Notes under the pieces: generated by a model
Database searches by the model: none
What the model was told of the DNA's origin: nothing
The model's input: only the letters and a program-made list of their open reading frames with translations
NCBI GenBank assembly: GCA_964036045.1
Contig: OZ038378.1
Coordinates: forward strand, 183,582,001-183,646,000
Source of the DNA: Eutreptiella sp. 'Long Island Sound 2002'
Taxonomy: Eukaryota > Protista > Euglenida
Reading direction: 5' to 3'
DNA length: 64,000 nucleotides
Made by a program: the position numbers and the translations under genes
Part shown: piece after piece, positions 18,444 through 63,957 of the stretch
Position numbering within the stretch: the stretch's first letter is position 1
Layout: each line of letters begins with the position of its first letter

Positions 18444-18479
<36 letters not shown>

Positions 18480-21400
18480 ACAGAAACACTCACACAGAAA
18501 GGCGCCTAGTGCAGGCGGGACATGCTACTGTTTTTGTTCTGCTTTGCACCTGACGAGATCTAGTACATCCAGACCAGTCTTTTCTGTGCTCTGTTTGTCG
18601 CCGAAGTGTGTGTGTGTAACCCTTCCATTCCTCAACAGTGCTGGGACTGGGGCAGTACTGCGTCAGGTGCCACAGCACCACTAGGGAGGAGGGAAAATGC
18701 CAATGCACATTCAAGGACCGTTGTTTGCGGCCAACAATTGTTGAATTACTGCGTGTGTACATAGTTTCTGATGTCGTGTTTTTTTTTGTAACACGTTTTT
18801 TGACGTCCCAAAAAACGTCCCAAAAAATTAGCTTTCCCCCTCTCGGCCTGAGGTGCCTGAGCACTACGCCAAAGGGACGTCAGGTGCCAAGGCACCACGG
18901 TAAACGCTGTTCCTTATTTTATTTTATGCTGTTCCTGCGCTGTTCTGTGGCGGATTGCAGCGGCCCTAGTGGCCCAGGTTGCATACCCCTGCCTTGCCGG
19001 TGGGCCAGCATGGACGCGCCTCAGATGAGATAGACTGAATGCCTTCAGACAGCGTGTTGTTGTCGCCGCGAGGGGGCGGCCAGCAACCACCCGCTTGTAG
19101 TGCGGCGGATGGCGCGGACCTGGAGGTGGTCACGCGGTACACTGAGCCACACTGTGGCGTGTGCAGCTTGGCGATGCATCCGGGCGGGCAGCTCCTATGT
19201 TGGGGTTGGAGGATTGCTCCGTGATGTTTTTCAGCGCCCCCCCCCCCCCCCTGTGAGCCCCGCACCCCTGTCAGAACCGCTGGAATTTTAGTTTCCGCAA
19301 CTTTTGGAACTTTACTGCGGCTCTCGCAGGGGGGGGGCAGGGGAGGGCAGTCCTGAGCCGTGGGTCGATGCCCATTTGTCCGAGTGGCACATCTGCTGTT
19401 CTTCTGAGATTTGGTTTCAGCAAGGGCTGCGGTCCACCGATGTTGAAGCGACGACGGGTGGCAGGCAAGGCATGGGGATTGGTGGGTCCTCTTTGGGGAT
19501 TTGGTTGTGGTGATCGCCCGAAGTTCTGGGAGCGGTTCTCAACGTGTGTTTGTGTGTGTGTGTGTGTGTGTACACACAGAAACACTCACACAGAACACCT
19601 GGGGCTTCCAAGCACAATCAGGACATGACGGGCGATACTCAATCTTTAAAACCAGCCACTGCCCCCCCCCCCCCCTTTGTGATCAGAGATTGCATGTTTC
19701 TGGAACAGTTTGAAATGTGGTGTGTTATGCACACCTCAAATCAACCCATCCAATCATCTGGACCAAATGTTGTGGCATTTCTCCAATTTTCCAAGCGTAT
19801 GTTCTCTCCACAAGTAGGCCACAATTTAGTGCTCCCTAGCAGCCCCCTCAGCCCCTCCTCCACCGAAACGCCCAGCTCCCTTCAGTCTTTTTCAGGCATG
19901 TTCAAGCACCAGGCTGTCTGAGTCCTTCAAGGTTCAATGGCCTGCTGCTCGCATTTGTGAACACCGGCAGTCGACGGAACACCATCCTCTTGTCCCCTGA
20001 CTCCCTGTTTCTGGTGACAGGAGGGGCGCCAGGTGCAGCCGGCAACCACCCGCTTGTAGTGCCGCGGATGGCGCGGACCTGGAGGTGGTCACACGGTACG
20101 CTGGGCCACACTGTGGCGTGTGCAGCTTGGCGATGCATCCGGGCGGGCAGCTCCTATGTTGGGGTTGGAGGATTGCTCCGTGATGTTTTTCAGCGCCCCC
20201 CCCCCCCCCTGTGAGCCCCGCACCCCTGTCAGAACCGCGGGAATTTTAGTTTCCGCAACTTTTGGAACTTTACTGCGGCTCTCGCAGGGGGGGGGCAGGG
20301 GAGGGCAGTCCTGAGCCGTGGGTCGATGCCCATTTGTCCGAGTGGCACATCTGCTGTTCTTCTGAGATTTGGTTTCAGCAAGGGCTGCGGTCCACCGATG
20401 TTGAAGCGACGACGGGTGGCAGGCAAGGCATGGGGATTGGTGGGTCCTCTTTGGGGATTTGGTTGTGGTGATCGCCCGAAGTTCTGAGAGCGGTTCTCAA
20501 CGTGTGTTTGTGTTTGTGTGTGTGTGTGTGTACACACAGAAACACTCACACAGAACACCTGGGGCTTCCAAGCACAATCAGGACATGACGGGCGATACTC
20601 AATCTTTAAAACCAGCCACTGCCCCCCCCCCCCCCTTTGTGATCAGAGATTGCATGTTTCTGGAACAGTTTGAAATGTGGTGTGTTATGCACACCTCAAA
20701 TCAACCCATCCAATCATCTGGACCAAATGTTGTGGCATTTCTCCAATTTTCCAAGCGTATGTTCTCTCCACAAGTAGGCCACAATTTAGTGCTCCCTAGC
20801 AGCCCCCTCAGCCCCTCCTCCACCGAAACGCCCAGCTCCCTTCAGTCTTTTTCAGGCATGTTCAAGCACCAGGCTGTCTGAGTCCTTCAAGGTTCAATGG
20901 CCTGCTGCTCGCATTTGTGAACACCGGCAGTCGACGGAACACCATCCTCTTGTCCCCTGACTCCCTGTTTCTGGTGACAGGAGGGGCGCCAGGTGCGGCC
21001 GGCAACCACCCGCTTGTAGTGCCGCGGATGGCGCGGACCTGGAGGTGGTCACACGGTACGCTGGGCCACACTGTGGCGTGTGCAGCTTGGCGATGCATCC
21101 GGGCGGGCAGCTCCTATGTTGGGGTTGGAGGATTGCTCCGTGATGTTTTTCAGCGTCCCCCCCCCCCCCTGTGAGCCCCGCACCCCTGTCAGAACCGCGG
21201 GAATTTTAGTTTCCGCAACTTTTGGAACTTTACTGCGGCTCTCGCAGGGGGGGGGGCAGGGGAGGGCAGTCCTGAGCCGTGGGTCGATGCCCATTTGTCC
21301 GAGTGGCACATCTGCTGTTCTTCTGAGATTTGGTTTCAGCAAGGGCTGCGGTCCACCGATGTTGAAGCGACGACGGGTGGCAGGCAAGGCATGGGGATTG

Positions 21401-24400
21401 GTGGGTCCTCTTTGGGGATTTGGTTGTGGTGATCGCCCGAAGTTCTGAGAGCGGTTCTCAACGTGTGTTTGTGTGTGTGTGTGTGTGTGTGTACACACAG
21501 AAACACTCACACAGAACACCTGGGGCTTCCAAGCACAATCAGGACATGACGGGCGATACTCAATCTTTAAAACCAGCCACTGCCCCCCCCCCCCCCCCTT
21601 TGTGATCAGAGATTGCATGTTTCTGGAACAGTTTGAAATGTGGTGTGTTATGCACACCTCAAATCAACCCATCCAATCATCTGGACCAAATGTTGTGGCA
21701 TTTCTCCAATTTTCCAAGCGTATGTTCTCTCCACAAGTAGGCCACAATTTAGTGCTCCCTAGCAGCCCCCTCAGCCCCTCCTCCACCGAAACGCCCAGCT
21801 CCCTTCAGTCTTTTTCAGGCATGTTCAAGCACCAGGCTGTCTGAGTCCTTCAAGGTTCAATGGCCTGCTGCTCGCATTTGTGAACACCGGCAGTCGACGG
21901 AACACCATCCTCTTGTCCCCTGACTCCCTGTTTCTGGTGACAGGAGGGGCGCCAGGTGCAGCCGGCAACCACCCGCTTGTAGTGCCGCGGATGGCGCGGA
22001 CCTGGAGGTGGTCACACGGTACGCTGGGCCACACTGTGGCGTGTGCAGCTTGGCGATGCATCCGGGCGGGCAGCTCCTATGTTGGGGTTGGAGGATTGCT
22101 CCGTGATGTTTTTCAGCGCCCCCCCCCCCCCCCCTGTGAGCCCCGCACCCCTGTCAGAACCGCGGGAATTTTAGTTTCCGCAACTTTTGGAACTTTACTG
22201 CGGCTCTCGCAGGGGGGGGGGCAGGGGAGGGCAGTCCTGAGCCGTGGGTCGATGCCCATTTGTCCGAGTGGCACATCTGCTGTTCTTCTGAGATTTGGTT
22301 TCAGCAAGGGCTGCGGTCCACCGATGTTGAAGCGACGACGGGTGGCAGGCAAGGCATGGGGATTGGTGGGTCCTCTTTGGGGATTTGGTTGTGGTGATCG
22401 CCCGAAGTTCTGAGAGCGGTTCTCAACGTGTGTTTGTGTGTGTGTGTGTGTGTGTGTACACACAGAAACACTCACACAGAACACCTGGGGCTTCCAAGCA
22501 CAATCAGGACATGACGGGCGATACTCAATCTTTAAAACCAGCCACTGCCCCCCCCCCCCCCCCTTTGTGATCAGAGATTGCATGTTTCTGGAACAGTTTG
22601 AAATGTGGTGTGTTATGCACACCTCAAATCAACCCATCCAATCATCTGGACCAAATGTTGTGGCATTTCTCCAATTTTCCAAGCGTATGTTCTCTCCACA
22701 AGTAGGCCACAATTTAGTGCTCCCTAGCAGCCCCCTCAGCCCCTCCTCCACCGAAACGCCCAGCTCCCTTCAGTCTTTTTCAGGCATGTTCAAGCACCAG
22801 GCTGTCTGAGTCCTTCAAGGTTCAATGGCCTGCTGCTCGCATTTGTGAACACCGGCAGTCGACGGAACACCATCCTCTTGTCCCCTGACTCCCTGTTTCT
22901 GGTGACAGGAGGGGCGCCAGGTGCAGCCGGCAACCACCCGCTTGTAGTGCCGCGGATGGCGCGGACCTGGAGGTGGTCACACGGTACGCTGGGCCACACT
23001 GTGGCGTGTGCAGCTTGGCGATGCATCCGGGCGGGCAGCTCCTATGTTGGGGTTGGAGGATTGCTCCGTGATGTTTTTCAGCGCCCCCCCCCCCCCCCCT
23101 GTGAGCCCCGCACCCCTGTCAGAACCGCGGGAATTTTAGTTTCCGCAACTTTTGGAACTTTACTGCGGCTCTCGCAGGGGGGGGGGCAGGGGAGGGCAGT
23201 CCTGAGCCGTGGGTCGATGCCCATTTGTCCGAGTGGCACATCTGCTGTTCTTCTGAGATTTGGTTTCAGCAAGGGCTGCGGTCCACCGATGTTGAAGCGA
23301 CGACGGGTGGCAGGCAAGGCATGGGGATTGGTGGGTCCTCTTTGGGGATTTGGTTGTGGTGATCGCCCGAAGTTCTGAGAGCGGTTCTCAACGTGTGTTT
23401 GTGTGTGTGTGTGTGTGTGTGTACACACAGAAACACTCACACAGAACACCTGGGGCTTCCAAGCACAATCAGGACATGACGGGCGATACTCAATCTTTAA
23501 AACCAGCCACTGCCCCCCCCCCCCCCCTTTGTGATCAGAGATTGCATGTTTCTGGAACAGTTTGAAATGTGGTGTGTTATGCACACCTCAAATCAACCCA
23601 TCCAATCATCTGGACCAAATGTTGTGGCATTTCTCCAATTTTCCAAGCGTATGTTCTCTCCACAAGTAGGCCACAATTTAGTGCTCCCTAGCAGCCCCCT
23701 CAGCCCCTCCTCCACCGAAACGCCCAGCTCCCTTCAGTCTTTTTCAGGCATGTTCAAGCACCAGGCTGTCTGAGTCCTTCAAGGTTCAATGGCCTGCTGC
23801 TCGCATTTGTGAACACCGGCAGTCGACGGAACACCATCCTCTTGTCCCCTGACTCCCTGTTTCTGGTGACAGGAGGGGCGCCAGGTGCGGCCGGCAACCA
23901 CCCGCTTGTAGTGCCGCGGATGGCGCGGACCTGGAGGTGGTCACACGGTACGCTGGGCCACACTGTGGCGTGTGCAGCTTGGCGATGCATCCGGGCGGGC
24001 AGCTCCTATGTTGGGGTTGGAGGATTGCTCCGTGATGTTTTTCAGCGTCCCCCCCCCCCCCTGTGAGCCCCGCACCCCTGTCAGAACCGCGGGAATTTTA
24101 GTTTCCGCAACTTTTGGAACTTTACTGCGGCTCTCGCAGGGGGGGGGCAGGGGAGGGCAGTCCTGAGCCGTGGGTCGATGCCCATTTGTCCGAGTGGCAC
24201 ATCTGCTGTTCTTCTGAGATTTGGTTTCAGCAAGGGCTGCGGTCCACCGATGTTGAAGCGACGACGGGTGGCAGGCAAGGCATGGGGATTGGTGGGTCCT
24301 CTTTGGGGATTTGGTTGTGGTGATCGCCCGAAGTTCTGAGAGCGGTTCTCAACGTGTGTTTGTGTGTGTGTGTGTGTGTGTGTACACACAGAAACACTCA

Positions 24401-27400
24401 CACAGAACACCTGGGGCTTCCAAGCACAATCAGGACATGACGGGCGATACTCAATCTTTAAAACCAGCCACTGCCCCCCCCCCCCCCCCCCCTTTGTGAT
24501 CAGAGATTGCATGTTTCTGGAACAGTTTGAAATGTGGTGTGTTATGCACACCTCAAATCAACCCATCCAATCATCTGGACCAAATGTTGTGGCATTTCTC
24601 CAATTTTCCAAGCGTATGTTCTCTCCACAAGTAGGCCACAATTTAGTGCTCCCTAGCAGCCCCCTCAGCCCCTCCTCCACCGAAACGCCCAGCTCCCTTC
24701 AGTCTTTTTCAGGCATGTTCAAGCACCAGGCTGTCTGAGTCCTTCAAGGTTCAATGGCCTGCTGCTCGCATTTGTGAACACCGGCAGTCGACGGAACACC
24801 ATCCTCTTGTCCCCTGACTCCCTGTTTCTGGTGACAGGAGGGGCGCCAGGTGCGGCCGGCAACCACCCGCTTGTAGTGCCGCGGATGGCGCGGACCTGGA
24901 GGTGGTCACACGGTATGCTGGGCCACACTGTGGCGTGTGCAGCTTGGCGATGCATCCGGGCGGGCAGCTCCTATGTTGGGGTTGGAGGATTGCTCCGTGA
25001 TGTTTTTCAGCGTCCCCCCCCCCCCCCTGTGAGCCCCGCACCCCTGTCAGAACCGCGGGAATTTTAGTTTCCGCAACTTTTGGAACTTTACTGCGGCTCT
25101 CGCAGGGGGGGGGCAGGGGAGGGCAGTAGGGGAGGGCAGTCCTGAGCCGTGGGTCGATGCCCATTTGTCCGAGTGGCACATCTGCTGTTCTTCTGAGATT
25201 TGGTTTCAGCAAGGGCTGCGGTCCACCGATGTTGAAGCGACGACGGGTGGCAGGCAAGGCATGGGGATTGGTGGGTCCTCTTTGGGGATTTGGTTGTGGT
25301 GATCGCCCGAAGTTCTGAGAGCGGTTCTCAACGTGTGTTTGTGTGTGTGTGTGTGTGTGTGTACACACAGAAACACTCACACAGAACACCTGGGGCTTCC
25401 AAGCACAATCAGGACATGACGGGCGATACTCAATCTTTAAAACCAGCCACTGCCCCCCCCCCCCCCCTTTGTGATCAGAGATTGCATGTTTCTGGAACAG
25501 TTTGAAATGTGGTGTGTTATGCACACCTCAAATCAACCCATCCAATCATCTGGACCAAATGTTGTGGCATTTCTCCAATTTTCCAAGCGTATGTTCTCTC
25601 CACAAGTAGGCCACAATTTAGTGCTCCCTAGCAGCCCCCTCAGCCCCTCCTCCACCGAAACGCCCAGCTCCCTTCAGTCTTTTTCAGGCATGTTCAAGCA
25701 CCAGGCTGTCTGAGTCCTTCAAGGTTCAATGGCCTGCTGCTCGCATTTGTGAACACCGGCAGTCGACGGAACACCATCCTCTTGTCCCCTGACTCCCTGT
25801 TTCTGGTGACAGGAGGGGCGCCAGGTGCGGCCGGCAACCACCCGCTTGTAGTGCCGCGGATGGCGCGGACCTGGAGGTGGTCACACGGTACGCTGGGCCA
25901 CACTGTGGCGTGTGCAGCTTGGCGATGCATCCGGGCGGGCAGCTCCTATGTTGGGGTTGGAGGATTGCTCCGTGATGTTTTTCAGCGTCCCCCCCCCCCC
26001 TGTGAGCCCCGCACCCCTGTCAGAACCGCGGGAATTTTAGTTTCCGCAACTTTTGGAACTTTACTGCGGCTCTCGCAGGGGGGGGGCAGGGGAGGGCAGT
26101 CCTGAGCCGTGGGTCGATGCCCATTTGTCCGAGTGGCACATCTGCTGTTCTTCTGAGATTTGGTTTCAGCAAGGGCTGCGGTCCACCGATGTTGAAGCGA
26201 CGACGGGTGGCAGGCAAGGCATGGGGATTGGTGGGTCCTCTTTGGGGATTTGGTTGTGGTGATCGCCCGAAGTTCTGAGAGCGGTTCTCAACGTGTGTTT
26301 GTGTGTGTGTGTGTGTGTGTGTACACACAGAAACACTCACACAGAACACCTGGGGCTTCCAAGCACAATCAGGACATGACGGGCGATACTCAATCTTTAA
26401 AACCAGCCACTGCCCCCCCCCCCCCCCCCCCCTTTGTGATCAGAGATTGCATGTTTCTGGAACAGTTTGAAATGTGGTGTGTTATGCACACCTCAAATCA
26501 ACCCATCCAATCATCTGGACCAAATGTTGTGGCATTTCTCCAATTTTCCAAGCGTATGTTCTCTCCACAAGTAGGCCACAATTTAGTGCTCCCTAGCAGC
26601 CCCCTCAGCCCCTCCTCCACCGAAACGCCCAGCTCCCTTCAGTCTTTTTCAGGCATGTTCAAGCACCAGGCTGTCTGAGTCCTTCAAGGTTCAATGGCCT
26701 GCTGCTCGCATTTGTGAACACCGGCAGTCGACGGAACACCATCCTCTTGTCCCCTGACTCCCTGTTTCTGGTGACAGGAGGGGCGCCAGGTGCGGCCGGC
26801 AACCACCCGCTTGTAGTGCCGCGGATGGCGCGGACCTGGAGGTGGTCACACGGTATGCTGGGCCACACTGTGGCGTGTGCAGCTTGGCGATGCATCCGGG
26901 CGGGCAGCTCCTATGTTGGGGTTGGAGGATTGCTCCGTGATGTTTTTCAGCGTCCCCCCCCCCCCCCTGTGAGCCCCGCACCCCTGTCAGAACCGCGGGA
27001 ATTTTAGTTTCCGCAACTTTTGGAACTTTACTGCGGCTCTCGCAGGGGGGGGGCAGGGGAGGGCAGTAGGGGAGGGCAGTCCTGAGCCGTGGGTCGATGC
27101 CCATTTGTCCGAGTGGCACATCTGCTGTTCTTCTGAGATTTGGTTTCAGCAAGGGCTGCGGTCCACCGATGTTGAAGCGACGACGGGTGGCAGGCAAGGC
27201 ATGGGGATTGGTGGGTCCTCTTTGGGGATTTGGTTGTGGTGATCGCCCGAAGTTCTGAGAGCGGTTCTCAACGTGTGTTTGTGTGTGTGTGTGTGTGTGT
27301 GTACACACAGAAACACTCACACAGAACACCTGGGGCTTCCAAGCACAATCAGGACATGACGGGCGATACTCAATCTTTAAAACCAGCCACTGCCCCCCCC

Positions 27401-28232
27401 CCCCCCCTTTGTGATCAGAGATTGCATGTTTCTGGAACAGTTTGAAATGTGGTGTGTTATGCACACCTCAAATCAACCCATCCAATCATCTGGACCAAAT
27501 GTTGTGGCATTTCTCCAATTTTCCAAGCGTATGTTCTCTCCACAAGTAGGCCACAATTTAGTGCTCCCTAGCAGCCCCCTCAGCCCCTCCTCCACCGAAA
27601 CGCCCAGCTCCCTTCAGTCTTTTTCAGGCATGTTCAAGCACCAGGCTGTCTGAGTCCTTCAAGGTTCAATGGCCTGCTGCTCGCATTTGTGAACACCGGC
27701 AGTCGACGGAACACCATCCTCTTGTCCCCTGACTCCCTGTTTCTGGTGACAGGAGGGGCGCCAGGTGCGGCCGGCAACCACCCGCTTGTAGTGCCGCGGA
27801 TGGCGCGGACCTGGAGGTGGTCACACGGTACGCTGGGCCACACTGTGGCGTGTGCAGCTTGGCGATGCATCCGGGCGGGCAGCTCCTATGTTGGGGTTGG
27901 AGGATTGCTCCGTGATGTTTTTCAGCGTCCCCCCCCCCCCTGTGAGCCCCGCACCCCTGTCAGAACCGCGGGAATTTTAGTTTCCGCAACTTTTGGAACT
28001 TTACTGCGGCTCTCGCAGGGGGGGGGCAGGGGAGGGCAGTCCTGAGCCGTGGGTCGATGCCCATTTGTCCGAGTGGCACATCTGCTGTTCTTCTGAGATT
28101 TGGTTTCAGCAAGGGCTGCGGTCCACCGATGTTGAAGCGACGACGGGTGGCAGGCAAGGCATGGGGATTGGTGGGTCCTCTTTGGGGATTTGGTTGTGGT
28201 GATCGCCCGAAGTTCTGAGAGCGGTTCTCAAC

Positions 28233-28268
<36 letters not shown>

Positions 28269-29331
28269 ACACAGAAACACTCACACAGAAAGGCGCCTAG
28301 TGCAGGCGGGACATGCTACTGTTTTTGTTCTGCTTTGCACCTGACGAGATCTAGTACATCCAGACCAGTCTTTTCTGTGCTCTGTTTGTCGCCGAAGTGT
28401 GTGTGTGTAACCCTTCCATTCCTCAACAGTGCTGGGACTGGGGCAGTACTGCGTCAGGTGCCACAGCACCACTAGGGAGGAGGGAAAATGCCAATGCACA
28501 TTCAAGGACCGTTGTTTGCGGCCAACAATTGTTGAATTACTGCGTGTGTACATAGTTTCTAATGTCGTGTTTTTTTTTTGTAACACGTTTTTCGACGTCC
28601 CAAAATACGTCCCAAAAAAATTGCTTTCCCCCTCTCGGCCTGAGGTGCCTGAGCACTACGCCAAAGGGACGTCAGGTGCCAAGGCACCACGGTAAACGCT
28701 GTTCCTTATTTTATTTTATGCTGTTCCTGCGCTGTTCTGTGGCGGATTGCGGCGGCCCTAGTGGCCCAGGTTGCATACCCCTGCCTTGCCGGTGGGCCAG
28801 CATGGACGCGCCTCAGATGAGATAGACTGAATGCCTTCAGACAGCGTGTTGTTGTCGCCGCGAGGGGGCGGCCAGCAACCACCCGCTTGTAGTGCGGCGG
28901 ATGGCGCGGACCTGGAGGTGGTCACACGGTACACTGAGCCACACTTGGCGTGTGCAGCTTGGCGATGCATCCGGGCGGGCAGCTCCTATGTTGGGGTTGG
29001 AGGATTGCTCCGTGATGTTTTTCAGCGTCCCCCCCCCCCTGTGAGCCCCGCACCCTTGTCAGAACCGCGGGAATTTTAGTTTCCGCAACTTTTGGAACTT
29101 TACTGCGGCTCTCGCAGGGGGGGGGCAGGGGAGGGCAGTCCTGAGCCGTGGGTCGATGCCCATTTGTCCGAGTGGCACATCTGCTGTTCTTCTGAGATTT
29201 GGTTTCAGCAAGGGCTGCGGTCCACCGATGTTGAAGCGACGACGGGTGGCAGGCAAGGCATGGGGATTGGTGGGTCCTCTTTGGGGATTTGGTTGTGGTG
29301 ATCGCCCGAAGTTCTGAGAGCGGTTCTCAAC

Positions 29332-29367
<36 letters not shown>

Positions 29368-30026
29368 ACACAGAAACACTCACACAGAAAGGCGCCTAGT
29401 GCAGGCGGGACATGCTACTGTTTTTGTTCTGCTTTGCACCTGACGAGATCTAGTACATCCAGACCAGTCTTTTCTGTGCTCTGTTTGTCGCCGAAGTGTG
29501 TGTGTGTAACCCTTCCATTCCTCAACAGTGCTGGGACTGGGGCAGTACTGCGTCAGGTGCCACAGCACCACTAGGGAGGAGGGAAAATGCCAATGCACAT
29601 TCAAGGACCGTTGTTTGCGGCCAACAATTGTTGAATTACTGCATGTGTACATAGTTTCTAATGTCGTGTTTTTTTTTTGTAACACGTTTTTCGACGTCCC
29701 AAAATACGTCCCAAAAAATTTGCTTTCCCCCTCTCGGCCTGAGGTGCCTGAGCACTACGCCAAAGGGACGTCAGGTGCCAAGGCACCACGTTAAATGCCG
29801 TTCCTTATTTTATTTTATGTTGTTCCTATGTTGTTCTGTGGCGGATTGCGGCGGCCAAGCTAGTGCAGCCGCAGCATGCCGCAGCACCTGTTTTTTGGAG
29901 CTGCACATGGGGGTTTTGAAGCATGCCGCAGCATGCCGCAGCGAGCCAAAATTTTCACGTGGCGGACTTTTTTTTTCATACCACGTCGAAACTCTGAACC
30001 CTTTGTTGCACAGGTGTCTCGGAACT

Positions 30027-30155: not shown

Positions 30156-30971
30156 ATGTCAAGTCCTGAAGGATACTGTCTGTCTGCTCCTACTGTGTTC
30201 GCACGGGAGACCTTCTGCCTGCCCCATGTCTCCCCAGTTTGTCTTTATTTGTGTTGTCATGAGTCAGTCATCTGCACCAACAACATGCAGTCAAGAGCCA
30301 ACCACACCACTTTCCCAATCAGATGGGATCAAGCGGAACAAGCGTGTTTTCAAAAGCAGACAGGTGGCCCAGCTGATCCTTTGGGTGCGCTTAATGACAT
30401 TAAGAGCGCACAGGCTGAGGTCACTCGTGGGAAGTTTCCCCCTGGCGTGCAGAAATTGCTCAGTGCATGTCCAGCTCCACAGGCTGCTGCTCAGAGCAAG
30501 GTTTTGCAACAGGCAGCCACAGTGATGTCCAGCAAGGTGGATAATCTGCATGCAAAGACTATCAAAGGGCAAGGCAAGACTCAGGCGGCAGTTAATTGTT
30601 TCAACCCAGAACTGCTGCAGACCAAAGAAATGATGTCTTATTCTGAGTTGTGTAAGCACATACCCAATGTGCCACAATCTGAGTGGGTCCGGTATATTGC
30701 TCTGCCAGCCCCGAGCCCTCTGCCGGATTCTACTGCAGCCAGAGTGGCATGGTGGCATGCCAAAAAAGACGATTTTCCTGTGTTGAGTAGCATTGCTGTT
30801 TTCTTTGTCCGACGACCACGCTCTGCTTGCCATGTCGAGCGAACGTTCAGTTTGATGGGCCACATCCAGACAAAGGACCGTTTGCATATGGGCAACGACA
30901 CTTTGCGCCATTTGGCTATGATGTATGTCAACAAACCCACTACAGACGATCCGGATGGTGAAAGTGATTAA
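30156..30971 (+). CDS. 271-aa ORF ending in an hAT transposase C-terminal dimerization domain (truncated transposase)
   Basis: WWHAKKDDFPVLSSIAVFFVRRPRSACHVERTFSLMGHIQTKDRLHM matches the hAT WW...FP.L..IA...P.S...ER.FS...R consensus; ATG to TAA without interruption, lying between the TIRs. Confidence 0.85.
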   Translation: MSSPEGYCLSAPTVFARETFCLPHVSPVCLYLCCHESVICTNNMQSRANHTTFPIRWDQAEQACFQKQTGGPADPLGALNDIKSAQAEVTRGKFPPGVQKLLSACPAPQAAAQSKVLQQAATVMSSKVDNLHAKTIKGQGKTQAAVNCFNPELLQTKEMMSYSELCKHIPNVPQSEWVRYIALPAPSPLPDSTAARVAWWHAKKDDFPVLSSIAVFFVRRPRSACHVERTFSLMGHIQTKDRLHMGNDTLRHLAMMYVNKPTTDDPDGESD

Positions 30972-39465: not shown

Positions 39466-39642
39466 GTGTAATTTTTTTTTTCGCTGTAAATGCGCGTAAC
39501 AAAAAAACCGTCAGGCCGTGTAATTTTTTTTTTGCTGTAAGTCGTGTAAGCCGGGTTACACGACTTACCGCAAAAAAAAAAATTACACGATGTGACGGTT
39601 TTTTTGTTACACGCATTTACAGCGGAAAAAAAAAATTACACG
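39466..39642. repeat. Imperfect ~175-bp palindrome (foldback) built from TTACACG/A-tract sub-repeats
   Basis: Arms meet at GTAAGTCGTGTAA-GCCGGG-TTACACGACTTAC (centre 39550-39555) and pair for roughly 85 bp. Repeated in each array unit; related one-orientation motifs at about 44675-44835. Confidence 0.8.
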
Positions 39643-42351
39643 ACTTACCGCAAAAAAAAAAAATTACACGATGTGACGATTTTTTCCTACACGCGTTTAC
39701 CACGAAAATTCAAAAATTACACAACCTTACCACAAAGGAAGAATTATCAATTTTACTAAAAAATGCCTGCCTATAGGCAATGTGCCCACCTCTGGGCCAC
39801 TTCTGATTCTGCCCCCCGCTCTGAAGCGGAGGGGACCCCCGAGGCGGCGGGGGTTATGTAGCCACCTTGCCCACTTGTGGGCCACTTCTGATTCTGCCCC
39901 CCGCTCTGAAGCGGAATAATGTCTTGCACCTGGACCCCTGACCTGGGCTATGGTTTGGTCAACATTCTTCCGATGGATGTGTGGTTTACCCCTTGGTGGC
40001 GGGTGTCAAACGCGAAATAGCAGGGGCTGATCGCACATGAGGGGCACAAGGAAAATGGGGCTGGTCACTGTCCAAAGTGGTGGCAACACCTCCTAGTTTG
40101 CTAAGGGGGCAGCACAACAACAGTTTATAAAACTTGGTGTGTCAAAACATTGTTAGCACACCCAATGACTCGTGCAAAAGAGACTGGTGTAGAAGAAGGA
40201 TGCAGAATACAAACCAATACTTGGGGCAAGGCAATGTTAGGCATGGCGGCCCGTTTGTACAAGCAAATGCAAGACCAGATGCTGGCTTGTATGTACTAGC
40301 CACAATAAGTATGTCTTTGCTCAACAAGTGGAATTGTCCAATACCTGGGGCATGTTGGTGGCTTGCCAGGCAAATTGAGTGGTGTGCGGCCCTTTTTTGC
40401 CTCTTCAAACAGGCCGGCTTGCAGACCGGGATTTGCCTATACAAACGGGCCAGCCTTTGGCCAGCCAAATAGCCTAGCATATCGCAAGCAATCAAGCCTG
40501 GCGACTTGGCCCCGAAGTCCTGCCCACCGTGTTACTTTGTGTGGTCAGTCAATCTGATTGGTGGGGACCATTCATGTAGTTGGAGAATCCACCATGTCAA
40601 AACAACCTGACCAACAAGGTGACCCGCTTTTGTGTATTACTAGCATGCGAAAGGTGTATGTTGTAATTCGTGTAATTTTTTTTTTTCGCTGTAAATGCGC
40701 GTAACAAAAAAACCGTCAGGCCGTGTAATTTTTTTTTTGCTGTAAGTCGTGTAAGCCGGGTTACACGACTTACCGCAAAAAAAAAAATTACACGATGTGA
40801 CGGTTTTTTTGTTACACGCATTTACAGCGAAAAAAAAAAATTACACGACTTACCGCAAAAAAAAAAAATTACACGATGTGACGGTTTTTTTGTTACACGC
40901 ATTTACAGCGGAAAAAAAAAATTACACGACTTACCGCAAAAAAAAAAAATTACACGATGTGACGATTTTTTCCTACACGCGTTTACCACGAAAATTCAAA
41001 AATTACACAACCTTACCACAAAGGAAGAATTATCAATTTTACTAAAAAATGCCTGCCTATAGGCAATGTGCCCACCTCTGGGCCACTTCTGATTCTGCCC
41101 CCCGCTCTGAAGCGGAGGGGACCCCCGAGGCGGCGGGGGTTATGTAGCCACCTTGCCCACTTGTGGGCCACTTCTGATTCTGCCCCCCGCTCTGAAGCGG
41201 AATAATGTCTTGCACCTGGACCCCTGACCTGGGCTATGGTTTGGTCAACATTCTTCCGATGGATGTGTGGTTTACCCCTTGGTGGCGGGTGTCAAACGCG
41301 AAATAGCAGGGGCTGATCGCACATGAGGGGCACAAGGAAAATGGGGCTGGTCACTGTCCAAAGTGGTGGCAACACCTCCTAGTTTGCTAAGGGGGCAGCA
41401 CAACAACAGTTTATAAAACTTGGTGTGTCAAAACATTGTTAGCACACCCAATGACTCGTGCAAAAGAGACTGGTGTAGAAGAAGGATGCAGAATACAAAC
41501 CAATACTTGGGGCAAGGCAATGTTAGGCATGGCGGCCCGTTTGTACAAGCAAATGCAAGACCAGATGCTGGCTTGTATGTACTAGCCACAATAAGTATGT
41601 CTTTGCTCAACAAGTGGAATTGTCCAATACCTGGGGCATGTTGGTGGCTTGCCAGGCAAATTGAGTGGTGTGCGGCCCTTTTTTGCCTCTTCAAACAGGC
41701 CGGCTTGCAGACCGGGATTTGCCTATACAAACGGGCCAGCCTTTGGCCAGCCAAATAGCCTAGCATATCGCAAGCAATCAAGCCTGGCGACTTGGCCCCG
41801 AAGTCCTGCCCACCGTGTTACTTTGTGTGGTCAGTCAATCTGATTGGTGGGGACCATTCATGTAGTTGGAGAATCCACCATGTCAAAACAACCTGACCAA
41901 CAAGGTGACCCGCTTTTGTGTATTACTAGCATGCGAAAGGTGTATGTTGTAATTCGTGTAATTTTTTTTTTCCGCTGTAAATGCGCGTAACAAAAAAACC
42001 GTCAGGCCGTGTAATTTTTTTTTTGCTGTAAGTCGTGTAAGCCGGGTTACACGACTTACCGCAAAAAAAAAAATTACACGATGTGACGGTTTTTTTGTTA
42101 CACGCATTTACAGCGAAAAAAAAAAATTACACGACTTACCGCAAAAAAAAAAAATTACACGATGTGACGGTTTTTTTGTTACACGCATTTACAGCGGAAA
42201 AAAAAAATTACACGACTTACCGCAAAAAAAAAAAATTACACGATGTGACGATTTTTTCCTACACGCGTTTACCACGAAAATTCAAAAATTACACAACCTT
42301 ACCACAAAGGAAGAATTATCAATTTTACTAAAAAATGCCTGCCTATAGGCA

Positions 42352-42686
42352 ATGTGCCCACCTCTGGGCCACTTCTGATTCTGCCCCCCGCTCTGAAGCG
42401 GAGGGGACCCCCGAGGCGGCGGGGGTTATGTAGCCACCTTGCCCACTTGTGGGCCACTTCTGATTCTGCCCCCCGCTCTGAAGCGGAGGGGACCCCCGAG
42501 GCGGCGGGGGTTATGCAGCCACTTTGCCCACTTGTGGGCCACTTCTGATTCTGCCCCCCGCTCTGAAGCGGAGGGGACCCCCAAGGCGGCAGGGGTTATG
42601 TAGCCACCTTGCCCACTTGTGGGCCACTTCTGATTCCGCCCCCCGCTCTGAAGCGGTGGGGACCCCCGAGGCGGCAAGGGTTATGT
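42352..42686. repeat. Short run (~4 monomers) of the diverged 85-bp satellite subfamily, overlapping the end of array unit 3
   Basis: Monomers GCCACTTCTGATTCTGCCCCCCGCTCTGAAGCGGAGGGGACCCCCGAGGCGGCGGGGGTTATGTAGCC, clearly homologous to the 1-9080 satellite and in the same orientation. Confidence 0.92.
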
Positions 42687-51700: not shown

Positions 51701-52272
51701 GTTTGGCAGAATCCCATGTCTCCGCCGAAAAAACACTGATGTTGGGCAGTGGGTCGGGCTTCCCGGTGGCACATGCGCGGATGCTACGGCAGGGGACAGG
51801 GGCGCAAGTGACTGTGGTCGACGCCAGTGATACCAATCTGGCGTACGCACAACGCCAGGCCCGCGCCGTGGGCATTGCGGACGACCGCCTGCGCTTCATC
51901 TGGGCGGATCCCGATGCACTACTTCGCGATTTGCCAGACACTGACCCGAATGTCGGCCGATTCGACGCCGTGGAATGCAGCGGGTTGCTACGGCACACTG
52001 CAGCGCCGGACGCACTTTTGCAGGGGGTCAGCCGCCTGCTGCGCCCGGGAGGGGTCGCGGTTCTCCAGTTGCCCTCCCTCGCGGCCGAAGCAGAGCTGGG
52101 GAGTGTCCGGCAGTTCGTGCAGGATCTTTCTGCGGGGCTCCCCAAGCCATTTATTGGGGCGGATGGGGAGTTTTTGCGCATGCCCTCCGTTCCGGAGGTT
52201 CGCATCGCGCGCCGTGCGCTGCTGGCCGCGTCAAGCGCCACCCCTGCGCGCCAGGCAGCGCTGCAGCGAAAG
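51701..52272 (+). CDS. Methyltransferase gene, exon n-1: class I SAM-dependent methyltransferase core
   Basis: Acceptor CTCTTTTCAG|51701 (phase 1, matching the previous donor); donor AAG|GTATGT at 52273 (phase 0). Motif I LMLGSGSG, VTVVDAS..NLAYAQ, and FDAVECSGLLRH...LLRPGG. Confidence 0.9.
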
Positions 52273-52470
52273 GTATGTGTGGCGAAGCATCCGCCTAGCT
52301 TGCGATTCTGTGTTGATTCTGTGGATTGTGTCTAGATGTTGAACATTCACGCACTTTTGCTTGTGACTTGTTTATTTCTATGTTTCTATGTTATTTTGCG
52401 CGCGTTGATGCCCGTGAAGGAGAAGTTGGGCCAAGGGGACAAGCAAGGCCACATGTGCCCTCGCTCAAGC

Positions 52471-58941: not shown

Positions 58942-59078
58942 ATGGACTCCAGCATCTTTGAGGCCCTGGAATACCGTGGGACCAAGGCCCGCACAATGCG
59001 CAGACCTGCGGACGTTGCAGCTCAGGCTCCCCTGAAAAAGCGGAAGACGGCGACTGAGACCACTGATGCTCATGGCAG
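58942..59078 (+). CDS. Tandem-HNH protein gene, exon 1 (NLS-like PLKKRK)
   Basis: ATG at 58942; donor GGCAG|GTACCT at 59079 (phase 2), joining exon 2 in frame. This may not be the true first exon. Confidence 0.65.
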
Positions 59079-59682
59079 GTACCTGGCCTTTGTAGTGGTT
59101 CGGGCCCACCACAAACAGCATCTCCAGTGGTCTGACTGGAAGGTACCCATACCACGGCGGTAGTATTGCGGGGGGTGGTCCGACGGAGGGGCGGGGGGGG
59201 CGAGGGTGGCTGGAATTGCGCCTTCCATGATTCGGGCCATCTGTCTTCAGTTGTTGTGCAAGAGTATTGGGCGTGGGGGTTGGGTTTCTGCAACTGCTGT
59301 CTGCTGGGGCCCACGTGTTCTGCTGGTGGTCCCTCGCGGGTCCAGCCTCATCGAAGTGGTTCCGGAACACCGAGGTTTTCTGGACCTCTGAATACACGTG
59401 CCTAAGGGGGACAAGGGGGAGAGCGTTTTTTGCGGCAACTTTTGCCCTACTCTTTGGCAACGGACCACACAAAAAAACGTCCAGGGGCCTAGGGATCCTC
59501 CTGAGCCCCCCAAACAATCCCCTCCGGCAGGCCGGGGCGGCAGGAGGCCGCAGATTCTTTGGGCCGTTCCCGGCCCTGCAGCCTTCTGCTGCTGCTGCTG
59601 TTGTTTGCTTCCTGATGTATGGGGGGAGGGGTGGAGGAATCTCTCTTTTTCCCTAGGGCCTCCCCAATACTCCCCTGTGCAG

Positions 59683-60229
59683 TGTCCACGTGGAAATCCT
59701 GTGCAAGGACTGCCGGAGGGGTGACTCCTCCTTCCGCCAGCAAAGCATCGCCGCCTTCTTGGGCAAACACAGTCCGGCCGGGGCCCCCGGTACAGCCTCA
59801 TCAACCCCCAGCTCTGGCCCCACCGGCCACGGCGCAGCGACTGCTCCGGACGACCCCCGTGTGCCCGTACCCCCGCAAGCCGCGCCACATGCGGAGGAAG
59901 GCGGCGGGGCCTCGGGCCTGGGCTCCACTGCAACCTCCAGCGGAGTAGATGAGGAGCGCGTGGAGCTGGAGCTGGAGGCTGCAGTGGCCCGGTCGGAGCA
60001 GGACTGGGCCGACGACCGGCCCTTGCCCGATGCAGATGCGGAGACCGCAGGGGCCGATCCGAGCGACGCCCCGTCGCATGCACCTTCCGAGCCGCTGCTA
60101 CTGTGCAGCCGCTGCCGGCGGCCGATGCGCGAAAAGGGGTCAGGCGCCGGGGCGGTCCGGTCGAAAGGGTGCCCGTTCCTCACGAGGCTGCAGAGCTACA
60201 AGCGTGTGGCACAAGAGAAGAGGGTTCAG
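59683..60229 (+). CDS. Tandem-HNH protein gene, exon 2 (CxxC motifs, PIP-box-like QQSIAAFL, UIM-like LEAAVARSEQD, start of domain 1)
   Basis: Acceptor TCCCCTGTGCAG|59683 (phase 2); donor CAG|GTATGC at 60230 (phase 0); open GC-rich frame ending SYKRVAQEKRVQ. Confidence 0.82.
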
Positions 60230-61028
60230 GTATGCCAGCGTAAGCCCCTCGGGTGGTGTAGGGAGGGGTCTCGTGGCTGAGTGTGGGACGGCAGTACCTG
60301 TGTTTACATTTGCATTCGTTGGACAACAAAAGCATCATTTTGGAACTTCTTGTCGGACGGGCTGCGTCCAGTCCACGCAGGACGAAATTGCTACCCGATG
60401 GACCTGCCAGGCATTGTGCCAATGTTGCTTGAGGACGCAAGGCTTCTGCATAATGGGCGACGTCTGCCAGCGACGAACACAGTAATTGCTGCCGGTTTTT
60501 TCTTCTCTTGGTGCAATTGAGCGGCATGAAGATCGCGAACGTGAGCATCCCCCCCCCCCCCCCCGCGGCGCACATGTGACCAGAAGCACCAGATGACCAA
60601 GGGGGCCCAGGTGCTCACGGCCAAGCAGCAACATCTGCAACAAGCGTGCGAGGGGGCACATGCTGCATTCCGAACTAAGCATATCGTGGAATGCAAACAA
60701 TACGTGTTGTTGAGTCGACGACAGACATTGCAAATGCATGCAACGAAATTCCAAATGCGCCACCATTAATTGAGGAAGTGTCGAGTCGTTACCGCAACGA
60801 CTCGCGGAGCGTGGTGCTTCTCTGGCGGGAGACGATCACCAGTGGTACGCGTGGACTGTCTTCAAATGATGGGGCATCTGTACACGGATTTTGGTGTACC
60901 TATTGAATTGGTCTATTCTGTTGAGATGCGCACGTGGTCTTCTGGTGTTGCCGGTCCTTGACTCTTTTAGGGGGGGGCGGGTCATCTCTCACTGATCTGT
61001 CCTGTCCGGCCATACTCTTGGCTTGCAG

Positions 61029-61193
61029 TTTGCCTTATCGGACTCTGAGGCCATCGCATTGATGCGCCGCCATTGCCTCTTTTGTGGAAGGGAGCCAGAT
61101 CCAGAACACGGCCATGGCATAACACGGCTCGGGCGCAGGAAGCCACACGACCCAAGGGGCATGGGAACGTTCAGTGTGGACAACACTGCAGCG
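61029..61193 (+). CDS. Tandem-HNH protein gene, exon 3 (domain 1 core)
   Basis: Acceptor CTTGGCTTGCAG|61029; donor GCG|GTATGG at 61194 (both phase 0). Translation FALSDSEAIALMRRHCLFCG...GITR...DNTAA. Confidence 0.85.
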
Positions 61194-61684
61194 GTATGGC
61201 CCGAACATTGCGTGCGGGGTTGAGGGTTTGGGTCGGCATCGCAACGGAGACACATTCGGATCGGGCCAAGGAGTGGGCTTTGGTACAGGACCCCCCCGCG
61301 CGCGCCAGACGTGTGGGAGTCGGGGTTGGAAGGGTTCTAGAAATCAATCCGCAGTTTGGAATAGAGCATCGGATGCAGGGGATGGCATCAAAATGAAAAC
61401 GTGTGATTGGGTATCGCGACCATTGCAAACTCCGGCCAACGGCAGCGGAATTGTGCTGAAAGCTCTCTGGAATCCGTACCCAAATCCGTCTCTACCATTT
61501 CATCTGTGCACAGTGTTGCATGCGCGCTGCTCCCGTGCGCCCCGCCCCCGGATCCCCGGAGTTCCAGATTGGCCTATGATCGCCAATGTTTGAGGGCGAA
61601 TCCCTACTTCCAGGCCTCTATCCTGCAGGAATTGTTGGTTGTCCAGGGATGCTTTGTCCAACAGGCTGCTCTGTGCTACCTCAG

Positions 61685-61768
61685 GCCTGCAGTCGCTGCA
61701 ATCTGATGAAAGGGTACCACGGCATGGATGCGTTTGTGGAGATTTGCATGCATATTGCCAACCACAAG
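61685..61768 (+). CDS. Tandem-HNH protein gene, exon 4 (end of domain 1)
   Basis: Acceptor GCTACCTCAG|61685; donor AAG|GTCTGC at 61769 (both phase 0). ACSRCNLMKGYHGMDAFVEICMHIANHK supplies the CxxCNxMK motif. Confidence 0.85.
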
Positions 61769-62415
61769 GTCTGCCTTCCTTCACACTCAACCCCCTGACC
61801 AGCAACCTAAAGTGAAGCTGCATTCAGACGTAAGGACGGAGACGTTCGGAGCCACCCAAGTGAGGCGCTTACTACCTGATGACAGCGACCTTGGAAAGAT
61901 TTTCATTCTCAATTCCTCTTGTGGGGCTGTTAAGTGCTGCTTTCTTCGTACAGCTGTACAATGTGAAGTAGACAGCTGCTCCTGGGCTGATAGACGGACT
62001 TCTTTGAAATTTCTTCCATGCATGTCACCCGTCGTTGGCCATGTTTGGACCTTGCCGCACAAATTGCAGCCCAAAGGTGGTTTTCCTTTGGCTCTTCGTG
62101 CTGAACGTCTCAATATCAGCGATCGATGTCATTGAACATCTCAATCTCAGCAGAGGGTGCATGTTTTTGCCCAAGCCACTTCTTTGGGCTGGAGGGCTGC
62201 CGGTACGCCAACCTCCACAAGGGCCTGCACTGTCGAAGTTGGGAGGCGGGAGTTGGGATGGCTCCCGAACAGGGAACCAGCGATCAAGGCGCCCTATCCC
62301 CCACGTTTCTGTTTCCTCGCCGTTGTACACACTGCAAAGCCAGGCCGTAGTCCATCATTTTTCATAGGGTCGCTCTGTGTGGTACTCCTGCATCCGCCCT
62401 TTGCATGATTTGCAG

Positions 62416-62543
62416 GGCTTGGGAACGTTCGGCTCCTTCCCCGACCGCTTTGTGAACAACACAAGTAAGCGATGTCGCAGTGCGTACCTCACGGACAGCA
62501 AGACGCATGCGTTGAGCAATGCCCAATTTGATGAAATTGTCCG
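62416..62543 (+). CDS. Tandem-HNH protein gene, exon 5 (linker and start of domain 2)
   Basis: Acceptor GATTTGCAG|62416 (phase 0); donor CG|GTATCC at 62544 (phase 2). Translation GLGTFGSFPDRF...HALSNAQFDEIV. Confidence 0.75.
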
Positions 62544-63181
62544 GTATCCCGGGAAGGCACAGGGTGGCATCTGTTGGAGTGTGCGTATGATGTACCTGCA
62601 CCTGTTGGCGTGACTCTCACTGTGCCTCTGCTTCTGTATGCTCCTCGCAGTGCACGTGCTTCTACCCGCACATGTGCCTGTGCCTGTGCATGCACATGTG
62701 CCTGTGCCTGTGCATGTACCCGTCCCACGGTTGTGCATCTGCATCTGCCTGTGCATGTGCCATTTTCCCTCCGTTGTCCGCCGCACCCGTCACCGCAGTT
62801 TCCCACATTTCCTGTTGCACTTTGCCTGATTTTGCCTCACACCCCCGGTTTCCATCTCTCGCCATCCCTTCCTCCTTCGCTCCACGTCTCCGCCCTGAGC
62901 AGTTGCTGAAGCGCAGGATGTGCCTATGGTAGACGCTTCATGAACCAGAGCTCCGGAACATTGCAGGCAGACACATTAAGAAAATAAAGCTAAAAAGTTT
63001 CGTGGGGGGCCGTGATGATTTTCCTGCTGTAGTCAATACACAACGTCAAGGTCCCGCAGGGGTGCCCGACTGGAGCCCCCGGACGTGTCGTGATGATCTT
63101 CGAAGTGGGTCATTTCATGTCGGGGGCGTTTTGCCGGCCTGGGGTACGCCCAGCATTGAAGTCCTTTCTGTTTGTGTGCAG

Positions 63182-63359
63182 GAAGTCCTGTTACTACTGT
63201 GGGAAGCAGAGCAACCCGCCGCATCACTACAATGGCCTCGATCGGCTTGACAGCACCATTCGAGTGTACACGACGGCCACGTGCGTCTCGTGCTGTGGCA
63301 CGTGCAACATGTGTAAGTACCGGTTCACTGAGGAGCAGTTCTTAGAACAGTGTATCAAG
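63182..63359 (+). CDS. Tandem-HNH protein gene, exon 6 (domain 2, HNH/His-Me finger)
   Basis: Acceptor TTTGTGTGCAG|63182 (phase 2). CYYCG...NGLDRLDS...VY...CVSCCGTCNMCK...FLEQCIK is the repeat signature of giant-virus-type HNH endonucleases. Probable donor AAG|GTTTGT at 63360; otherwise the frame stops at 63383. Confidence 0.88.
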
Positions 63360-63957
63360 GTTTGTCTGCGTGACTATAGATAGTGGCAAGGGTGCCACTG
63401 AGTTAGAACTGCAGCTTAGGATGTGTTAAATGGCTTTCATGGCAGAGGCTGGGCCGAAGGCTTAGTCTTCACCATGAGGCTGAGTTCTGGAAGTCGAATG
63501 TGGGCCCAGATTCGGTGAACAATTCCTTCGGGCTACAGATTCCCATTTGTTTGTCGAATTCGCACGAAGCCAAATCTTTTGTAATTCGGCTCAACCCTGA
63601 GGCCCGATTCAACATCCCTGGAGACACCGCGAACTTGGCACAGATGCAGTGTTTGGTACTGTCGAACGCAGCCAAGTGATGAAGACATGCAGTTTTATCC
63701 AAAGGTCATTTGGGACTCATCTTTTGCACCTTCTACCAAGCTTCCTCGGTGGGCCTCACCCAGTCTGTGACTTCCCCCTGTGGTTCGGGGTTGATTGGCT
63801 TTGGTGTTGTTGCAATGGGGCACGCTTTGTTTGACGTTGTGTGTGCCATGTTCTGCCAGTGGAACCATTATCGAGTCAGGTCCACAGCATCATCCGACAT
63901 GTGCACGTGAATGCACAACCCACACATGCTGAGGCACCGGTCCTCACTGTCCACCAG

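Follow-up and report, generated by a model that had tools for sequence, protein, structure and literature searches.

Does a 64,000-nucleotide stretch of the Eutreptiella sp. 'Long Island Sound 2002' genome (contig OZ038378.1, positions 183,582,001 to 183,646,000; hereafter the window, with positions counted from its first letter) encode a nuclease that short recruitment motifs bring to replication forks? An earlier note, made from the letters of the window, had pointed to three peptides upstream of HNH domains that resemble a nuclear localization signal (NLS), a PCNA-interacting protein (PIP) box, and a ubiquitin-interacting motif (UIM), and had proposed a fork nuclease convergent on the logic of animal ZRANB3. 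The gene in question has six exons and, as family alignments show, belongs to a widespread, uncharacterized, and unnamed family of algal and protist proteins. Comparison of aligned columns also shows that its nuclease core is a single-chain tandem of PacI-type His-Me finger domains, the second of which (HNH2) keeps the catalytic residues that the first (HNH1) has lost. That the protein is a PCNA-tethered PacI-type nuclease with one active site and lineage-variable ubiquitin readers, an analogue of the nuclease arm of ZRANB3 and unrelated to it, is in our judgement an evenly balanced proposition.

The gene model is fixed by the architecture pattern that is conserved across the family, and its parts are the following:

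58942..63383, + strand: the whole gene, with six exons, 1263 nucleotides (nt) of coding sequence, and a product of 420 amino acids (aa)
58942 and 63381-63383, + strand: the ATG and the TAG stop, the two ends of the six-exon gene
58942..59078, + strand: exon 1, residues 1-45 plus 2 nt; its donor TGGCAG/gtacct matches the acceptor at 59683 in phase
59683..60229, + strand: exon 2, residues 46-228, placed by family alignments; acceptor ctgtgcag/T, donor GTTCAG/gtatgc
61029..61193, + strand: exon 3, residues 229-283, placed by its splice sites; first half of HNH1 with CLFCG, GITRLG, MGTF, and VDN
61685..61768, + strand: exon 4, residues 284-311, placed by its splice sites; HNH1 helix ACSRCNLMKG, then another helix
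62416..62543, + strand: exon 5, residues 312-353 plus 2 nt; the conserved inter-domain linker GLGTFGSFPDRFVNNTSKRCRSAYLTDSKTHALSNAQFDEIV
63182..63383, + strand: exon 6, residues 354-420 and the stop; the entire HNH2 domain

Introns 1-5 measure 604, 799, 491, 647, and 638 nt, every one has GT-AG ends, and the frame is kept throughout. Over almost its entire length the spliced 420-aa product can be aligned with homologues, at 40-57% identity (E down to 7e-102), including 44% over 366 aa with P0179 (E 7e-102) and 43% with P0171 from Pyramimonas obovata (E 2e-93). Because the model aligns over nearly its full length, the three motifs and the HNH domains stand in one protein, as had been supposed. 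The three peptides are exact by translation as well (59029-59049, 59738-59761, and 59948-60004), though they come from two exons and two frames. PLKKRKT is read in frame 1; QQSIAAFL and the UIM-like stretch share frame 2, within an open reading frame (ORF) that gene calling of the prokaryotic kind had shortened to 196 aa (P0001). Intron 1 (59079-59682, GT-AG, donor CAG/gt, acceptor cag/T) separates PLKKRKT from the other two, and splicing 59078 to 59683 restores the family pattern 'basic patch..DG.V.VE(I/V)LC..CRR'. Exon 2 encodes both zinc knuckles, the PIP-like motif, the acidic linker, and the helix RLQSYKRVAQEKRVQ, and exon 5 fits the family consensus GLG.FG.FP.RF.NN.SKRSRS.Y...SKTH.LTN..F..IV. 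The features encoded by the first two exons are:

58942..58980, + strand: terminal motif MDSSIFEALEYRG, which fits the family pattern hydrophobic-[DE]-x-F-x-F-x-G
59029..59049, + strand: basic patch PLKKRKT, residues 30-36, by translation; it leads into a beta-hairpin
59702..59713, + strand: zinc knuckle 1, CKDC, with C53 and C56, within VHVEILCKDCRR
59738..59761, + strand: PIP-box-like QQSIAAFL, residues 65-72, by translation
59762..60094, + strand: variable acidic Ala/Pro/Gly/Ser-rich linker, residues 73-183, predicted to be disordered (predicted local distance difference test, pLDDT, ~50)
59948..60004, + strand: UIM-like stretch DEERVELELEAAVARSEQD, residues 135-153, by translation; an isolated predicted helix
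60104..60115, + strand: zinc knuckle 2, CSRC, with C187 and C190, invariant; placed by profile alignment to the CPRC of PacI

Three candidate assignments were rejected. A splice from 59142 to 59657 is in frame but adds residues present in no homologue, and was replaced by the 59078 to 59683 junction. An exon at 60380-60484, considered as part of a third HNH-like module, occurs in no homologue, and exon 2 joins straight to 61029. The segment 62130-62560 had been taken for a decayed HNH copy; 62416-62543 within it is the conserved inter-domain linker. No paralogues of the gene were found within the 64-kb window, where it is single-copy, and an Rfam scan of the window gave no matches. Intron 5 of the gene contains an imperfect TGTGCC/TGTGCA microsatellite (62656-62761).

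An exhaustive protein search queried with the HNH2 exon (exon 6) returned 4035 relatives at E<=1e-3 and 307 at E<=1e-10, mostly with two matched stretches per protein. Full-length relatives share one order from the N- to the C-terminus: a basic patch with RQAxE; ..DG.V.VE(I/V)LC..CRR; Q.SL..FF 5-7 residues farther on; a variable acidic linker; LLC.RCR.PM...CPF..LK.YK; HNH1; the linker GLG.FG.FP.RF.NN.SKRSRS.Y..SKTH.LTN; and HNH2. Named members come from P. obovata, P. parkeae, Guillardia theta, Emiliania huxleyi, Tetraparma gracilis, Lotharella oceanica, Prorocentrum, another dinoflagellate, and many marine metatranscriptome contigs; the family covers green, cryptophyte, haptophyte, stramenopile, chlorarachniophyte, and dinoflagellate algae. 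Every one of these members is annotated as 'hypothetical' at source. A literature search found no description of a PIP-bearing PacI-like family; the algal family is nameless in the sources consulted and has no Pfam model, and a 2017 census of His-Me finger nucleases lists just 6 eukaryotic sequences in the PacI group (PMC5714182). Pfam gave no useful match on single exons of the window gene, no family for the arm when window pieces and homologues were scanned, and no fused repair domains in the long relatives. A word search with exon 2 returned no relatives of 105-334 aa besides the window's own ORF P0001. Column counts given below refer to family alignments of 25 and 30 rows, and catalytic columns were scored over 29 members.

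The nuclease core is most informative in its second half, for which the assignments are:

63189..63317, + strand: HNH2 core CYYCG..HHYNGLDRLD..RVY..CVSCCGTCNMCK, from family columns and comparison with PacI
63240-63242, 63267-63269, and 63306-63308, + strand: putative catalytic residues Asp374, Tyr383, and Asn396, respectively, as counterparts of PacI residues

A Foldseek search with the AlphaFold model of the Pyramimonas orthologue P0171 (mean pLDDT 79.7, predicted template modelling score 0.73) placed PacI first (3ldy_A, E 2.2e-3, probability 1.0), followed by Gme HNH, McrA, Cas9 HNH, and Cap5. PacI was likewise the top match of the family profile, which aligns it from knuckle 2 through HNH1. 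A PDB search with the HNH2 exon alone gave chance matches only; the single-exon HNH-like domain at 63171-63371 matches PHROG 1035 'endonuclease VII' (E 1e-6), and PF01844 passes its cut-off in the relative P0048 (21.9 versus 21.4 bits). In the His-Me classification PacI falls into 'group 20', whose members come mostly from giant viruses and work with a Tyr where the catalytic His is missing (PMC5714182); in PacI, one Asp and one Asn bind the metal and the Tyr acts as general base (PMC4081073, PMC5714182). The features shared with this group are the N-terminal CxxC zinc site, CxxCG, G-[LIV]-D-R-x-D replacing D-H, the omega-loop Tyr, and C..CN..K, and PacI itself has G-V-D-R-x-D, ..G-Y.., and C..CN..K in common with the algal family. 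PacI is a 142-residue homodimer, whereas the window protein carries two domains in one chain, has an added arm of ~185 residues, and has a eukaryotic nucleus as host.

The canonical HNH general-base His is absent, with D-R in place of D-H, and HNH2 has GLDRLD and RVY. Across the family, HNH2 keeps Asp and Arg (29/29 each) and also Tyr and Asn (28/29 each); five residues before the Asp stands an invariant His. At the PacI Asp position HNH1 has T in 24 members, S in three, and N in two (0/29 Asp), and the Asn is kept; its Tyr position is Y in 19 and F in 10, with Phe in the window protein, in which the omega-loop Tyr is found in HNH2 alone. The C..CN..K of HNH1 and the CxxC...CxxC pairs are invariant. 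PacI keeps both Asp and Tyr, and HNH1 of the window protein has neither. These columns argue for a single active site, in HNH2, and the endonuclease activity assigned to it is putative.

The earlier note had spoken of a virus-type nuclease, and the PacI likeness and chlorovirus homologues bear this out. A viral search with a single HNH exon found no relatives; with the family alignment it recovered 25 loci. Chlorovirus-sized and other giant-virus contigs share the core at 30-35% identity with both HNH copies intact and in the same order of zinc ribbon, HNH1, linker, and HNH2, as in a 310-aa ORF on a 330,611-bp contig (L005, 2722-3654), which has no PIP-like motif. In the viral proteins each of the two copies retains Asp, Arg, Gly-Tyr, and Asn, a set that is incomplete in HNH1 of the window protein. 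No viral match starts before query residue 126: neither the viral nor the PacI forms have the arm, and the viral proteins lack the terminal motif, the RQAxE patch, knuckle 1, the PIP-like motif, and the acidic linker. Of the best 150 representatives, 65 lack the arm and have Asp in both copies, and 22 have the arm and T, S, or N in HNH1; judged from this distribution, the pairing of the arm with a lost HNH1 Asp is a clade feature and not a set of independent events. Armless tandem PacI-type HNH genes lie on chlorovirus-sized contigs (loci L004, L005, L006, L008, and L024), and one contig of 368,683 bp has two copies of such a gene. The HNH gene at L005 adjoins an ORF that resembles the small subunit of ribonucleotide reductase.

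The viral kinship is where a different explanation finds its footing, namely that the protein is a domesticated or still selfish giant-virus/PacI-type endonuclease (homing-type, restriction-like, or antiviral), with an arm for nuclear import and regulation and not for stalled-fork repair. The identity of the core to giant-virus contigs, the predominantly viral make-up of the PacI group (PMC5714182), and an arm that matches no Pfam family all agree with it. We nevertheless consider it quite improbable: the gene is present in one copy in the window and has five spliceosomal introns, the architecture is orthologous over at least six algal lineages and is found in transcriptomes, and the clade-wide loss of the metal-binding Asp of HNH1 suits a specialized cellular enzyme better than a mobile double-strand cutter.

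The case for PCNA tethering centres on the PIP-like motif, which has the family form Q-x-[ST]-[LIVM]-x-x-F-F and directly follows the first zinc knuckle. Its Gln is invariant (25/25 and 30/30 aligned rows), as fixed as the zinc cysteines; position 4 is L, I, V, or M in every member, position 3 is S or T in 24/30, and both aromatics (positions 7-8) are present in 17 of the 30 distinct members (e.g., QQSLSGFF, QSSLAGFF, QPSLFGFF, and QTSLESFF). Column entropy is 0, 1.46, 1.03, 1.67, and 1.81 at motif positions 1, 3, 4, 7, and 8, compared with 2.5-2.9 at positions 2, 5, and 6 and >2.6 downstream, and in these alignments the periodicity is that of a PIP box. We take the family consensus RQxSLxxFFGK to resemble the N-terminal PIP boxes of DNA ligase I, MSH6, and UNG2. 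When the 183-residue arm is shuffled with its composition kept, the relaxed PIP pattern arises in 0.07% of cases; it occurs five times in the six-frame translation of the window (128,000 residues). A short helix is predicted over the motif (pLDDT ~60-70), and a PDB search with a 22-column profile of the region gave no matches. The motif called by the earlier note is thus conserved in orthologues relative to its flanks, by entropy and by the invariant Gln, though not in canonical form; QQSIAAFL is of the F-L type, as in P0033.

Several observations weigh against reading the protein as a PCNA-tethered nuclease. QQSIAAFL fails the canonical Q-x-x-[ILM]-x-x-[FY]-[FY] at position 8, which is Leu. 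About one third of members have degenerate aromatics (QLSLTELA, QMTLGDSA, and QQTLQFSS) and keep Q, S/T, and L, and this retention without aromatics hints, as far as the alignment goes, that something besides the PCNA pocket constrains the motif. A zinc knuckle lies eight residues before it and, in some members, the next one just nine residues after it, so that access of PCNA may be hindered. The conserved i, i+3, i+6, and i+7 positions would also fit an amphipathic helix packed on a domain. Furthermore, the PacI matches by fold and profile are weak in E-value, and ubiquitin readers occur in just 7 of ~30 members.

The zinc site of the arm bears directly on what this helix might be. The invariant arm columns in the 25- and 30-row alignments are four cysteines, one Arg, and the PIP-like Gln. 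The cysteines of knuckle 1 and the Arg that follows are invariant in 25/25 and 30/30 rows (pLDDT 90-92 in the homologue model), and knuckle 2 is the counterpart of the first CxxC of PacI. The alignments show a conserved four-Cys zinc site that is split over knuckles 1 and 2. None of its cysteines varies, and the pair that corresponds to the second CxxC in the N-terminal zinc site of PacI is degenerate in the algal family; knuckle 1 therefore probably completes a PacI-type N-terminal zinc site. Q-x-S-L-x-x-F-F could accordingly be a structural amphipathic helix of this split zinc ribbon, with the linker as an inserted loop, in which case the motif would be a PIP look-alike and the protein a nuclease or DNA binder that reaches its target without PCNA. 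The invariance of the four cysteines and the degenerate PacI pair agree with such a helix, as do the aromatic pair 6-9 residues past the first CxxC in viral and PacI zinc ribbons, the persistence of Q, S/T, and L where the aromatics are gone, and linkers of just 9-10 residues in some members. However, predicted confidence is ~90 in the knuckle and falls to 58-71 in the motif, invariance of a Gln typifies a contact with the PCNA Q-pocket and not a helix cap, viral and PacI forms fold without the arm, and co-occurring ubiquitin-binding motifs (UBM) and Npl4-type zinc fingers (NZF) point to fork-associated recruitment. On these grounds we regard a purely structural helix as unlikely, if less so than a selfish or antiviral enzyme.

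The basic patch that precedes knuckle 1 is also a family feature. KKRK (residues 32-35) fits the classical monopartite NLS pattern K-[KR]-x-[KR], and the columns of the patch are K/R-rich in 16-18 of 23 rows, with the conserved form [KR][KR]x[YLH]RQAxE; the NLS-like call therefore holds as a conserved K/R cluster before RQAxE. By composition, K[KR]x[KR] arises in 4.7% of shuffles of the 183-residue arm that preserve it. In the P0171 model, pLDDT is ~77 over the basic patch stretch and 77-92 over the beta-hairpin and zinc knuckle between the patch and the PIP-like motif. The suggestion that all three peptides lie in a disordered Ala/Pro/Ser-rich arm fits the UIM-like stretch; it does not fit the basic patch and PIP-like motif, which flank this confidently predicted hairpin and knuckle. 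At the start of the chain, MDSSIFEALEYRG aligns position by position with FLDAFAFQG, LDLDAFAFAG, LLEGFRFAN, and others. The pattern hydrophobic-[DE]-x-F-x-F-x-G is N-terminal in ~17 members and extreme C-terminal in three, where it follows NPF; homologues with the motif include P0012, P0013, P0034, P0171, P0177, P0178, P0043, P0175, and P0176. It fits none of the PIP, AlkB homologue 2 PCNA-interacting motif (APIM), REV1-interacting region (RIR), and MLH1-interacting protein (MIP) patterns.

The UIM call is not upheld by conservation. Linker length among homologues varies between 9 and 176 aa, no column of the linker is conserved, and no counterpart of the UIM-like stretch was found in ~30 of them, the closest (P0179 and P0177) included. 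Pfam UIM (PF02809) gave no match on it at E<=1, and a PDB search with the segment found no relatives. The pattern itself is present, with an acidic run followed by hydrophobic-x-x-Ala-x-x-x-Ser-x-x-acidic on a predicted helix; AlphaFold gives this helix (90-110 of exon 2) a pLDDT of 87/74, compared with ~50 for the linker, and it is the sole confident helix there. In the model this isolated helix fits a UIM and equally any Glu/Ala/Leu-rich stretch. Shuffling the 111-residue linker yields the UIM core in 10.8% of cases, and the core occurs nine times in the six-frame translation of the window (128,000 residues). Taken together, the missing counterparts, the absent Pfam and PDB matches, and the frequency of the core in shuffles incline us to regard the stretch as a compositional accident, a Glu/Ala/Leu-rich helix in an acidic low-complexity linker that does not bind ubiquitin. 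We hold this only somewhat more probable than its opposite, with three facts on the other side: the stricter acidic form appears in just 0.23% of shuffles, the stretch is the one confidently helical island of the linker, and relatives have other ubiquitin readers in the same arm.

Those readers are of two kinds. Four members (P0048, P0049, P0100, and P0127) have a UBM, 'VDPSVLAELPxxIR', upstream of the basic patch; Pfam UBM matches three of the four at E 0.001-0.01, and a profile of the four matches the UBMs of REV1 (E 2.1e-5), HUWE1 (2.1e-4), and Pol iota (0.5). Three others (P0129, P0079, and P0199) open with a RanBP2/NZF finger, also upstream of the basic patch, and two of these have the C-T-F signature. 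Pfam RanBP scores 27.1 bits on P0129 (cut-off 27), and a profile of the three matches Nup153 (3e-8) and the NZF of Npl4 (4e-7), as well as the NZFs of HOIP, TAB2/3, HOIL-1L, and TRABID. By these profile matches, different lineages put different ubiquitin-binding modules on one arm. The window protein itself has neither a UBM nor an NZF, and its helix at 59948-60004 is possibly a third solution. Because ubiquitin-binding modules recur in the arm of the family, recruitment by PCNA plus ubiquitin, like that of ZRANB3, is a reasonable proposal, and the UBM and NZF of the relatives are the strongest indirect support for the PCNA-ubiquitin idea put forward in the earlier note.

ZRANB3 combines a PIP box, an NZF, and a C-terminal His-Me/HNH nuclease, and PCNA recruits it and stimulates its cleavage (PMC5481773). 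The family has a PIP-like motif and HNH nuclease domains, with an N-terminal NZF found in three relatives and not in the window protein. ZRANB3 also has a SNF2 ATPase, a substrate-recognition domain, and an APIM, none of which the window protein has: no SNF2 or helicase Pfam match was found in window pieces and homologues, the arm and the two HNH domains account for every exon of the window gene, and a scan of the spliced protein for the APIM pattern [KR][FYW][LIVA][LIVA][KR] found none. ZRANB3 has one canonical His-type HNH domain, whereas the window protein has a PacI-type tandem, its module order is reversed, and no sequence homology is detectable, which makes the relation one of analogy and not of membership. 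Since the SNF2 motor, the APIM, and the canonical HNH His are absent, the parallel with ZRANB3 proposed earlier would extend to the recruitment-plus-nuclease part only. A second parallel is offered by REV1 and DNA polymerase iota, whose UBM recurs in four relatives beside the PCNA-box-like motif; those two proteins read ubiquitinated PCNA through their UBMs and have polymerases as catalytic modules, and the algal family has nuclease domains.

We infer that the window protein may bind PCNA, bind ubiquitin, and cleave DNA, and in a PCNA-tethered nuclease the parts would act as follows. The basic patch would serve nuclear import or DNA contact, and the PIP-like motif would dock on PCNA. A lineage-variable ubiquitin reader, a UBM or NZF in relatives and possibly the isolated helix at 59948-60004 in the window protein, would bias binding to ubiquitinated PCNA or another ubiquitinated fork factor. 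HNH2 would then cut one strand by the PacI mechanism, with Asp374 and Asn396 holding the metal and Tyr383 as the base. A wider scenario is more tentative, and we think it somewhat less likely to be right than wrong: a giant-virus/PacI-type restriction-like nuclease would have become a one-active-site enzyme across most algal lineages, brought to (ubiquitinated) PCNA by an invariant motif of PIP type and by swappable UBM, NZF, and perhaps UIM modules, in an independent invention of the nuclease-arm logic of ZRANB3, and its terminal motif would recruit a further partner.

The window looks eukaryotic, with long satellite arrays, a hAT dimerization domain, and short exons bounded by GT-AG; its relatives are algal and giant-viral, and no part of it resembles human sequence. 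An 85-bp satellite (~107 copies, 92-94% matches, G+C 0.63) at 5-9080 occupies the first 9 kb, and a four-copy island of a related unit lies at 42355-42686. The first 9 kb are followed by a 31-bp satellite, AACCATCCAGAGCCCATCAGGAATAAACAGC, with ~216 copies at 9088-15828 and extreme strand asymmetry (AT skew +0.53, GC skew -0.3). A long-period tandem repeat of ~965-980 bp (about 18400-29400) has regular (GT)15 tracts and identical ORFs repeated on both strands. Three copies of another unit (39556-42308), 1205 and 1286 bp apart, each contain an 81-bp A-rich tandem (TTACACGACTTAC..A12), and related units of 25-28 bp occur at 44.6-44.8 kb. The ORF at 30156-30971 (+ strand) matches the hAT C-terminal dimerization domain (PF05699, E 2.9e-5, above cut-off) and is probably a remnant of a hAT transposase. 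Two exon-sized ORFs belong to neighbouring genes: one at 16555-17232 (+ strand) with a Laminin_G_3/concanavalin-like domain (E 1.5e-10), and one at 51703-52335 (+ strand) with a class I S-adenosylmethionine (SAM) methyltransferase domain (E 4e-12).

If the motif does bind PCNA, the family would be a second, independently assembled clamp-tethered HNH nuclease, built on the unusual Tyr-based chemistry of PacI. Its carriers would be ecologically dominant lineages of phytoplankton in which no ZRANB3-type enzyme is obvious, and it would be a clear case of ubiquitin-reader swapping (UBM, NZF, and possibly UIM) on one scaffold. It would also offer a testable way into the handling of stalled or damaged forks, or of foreign DNA under replication, in algae.

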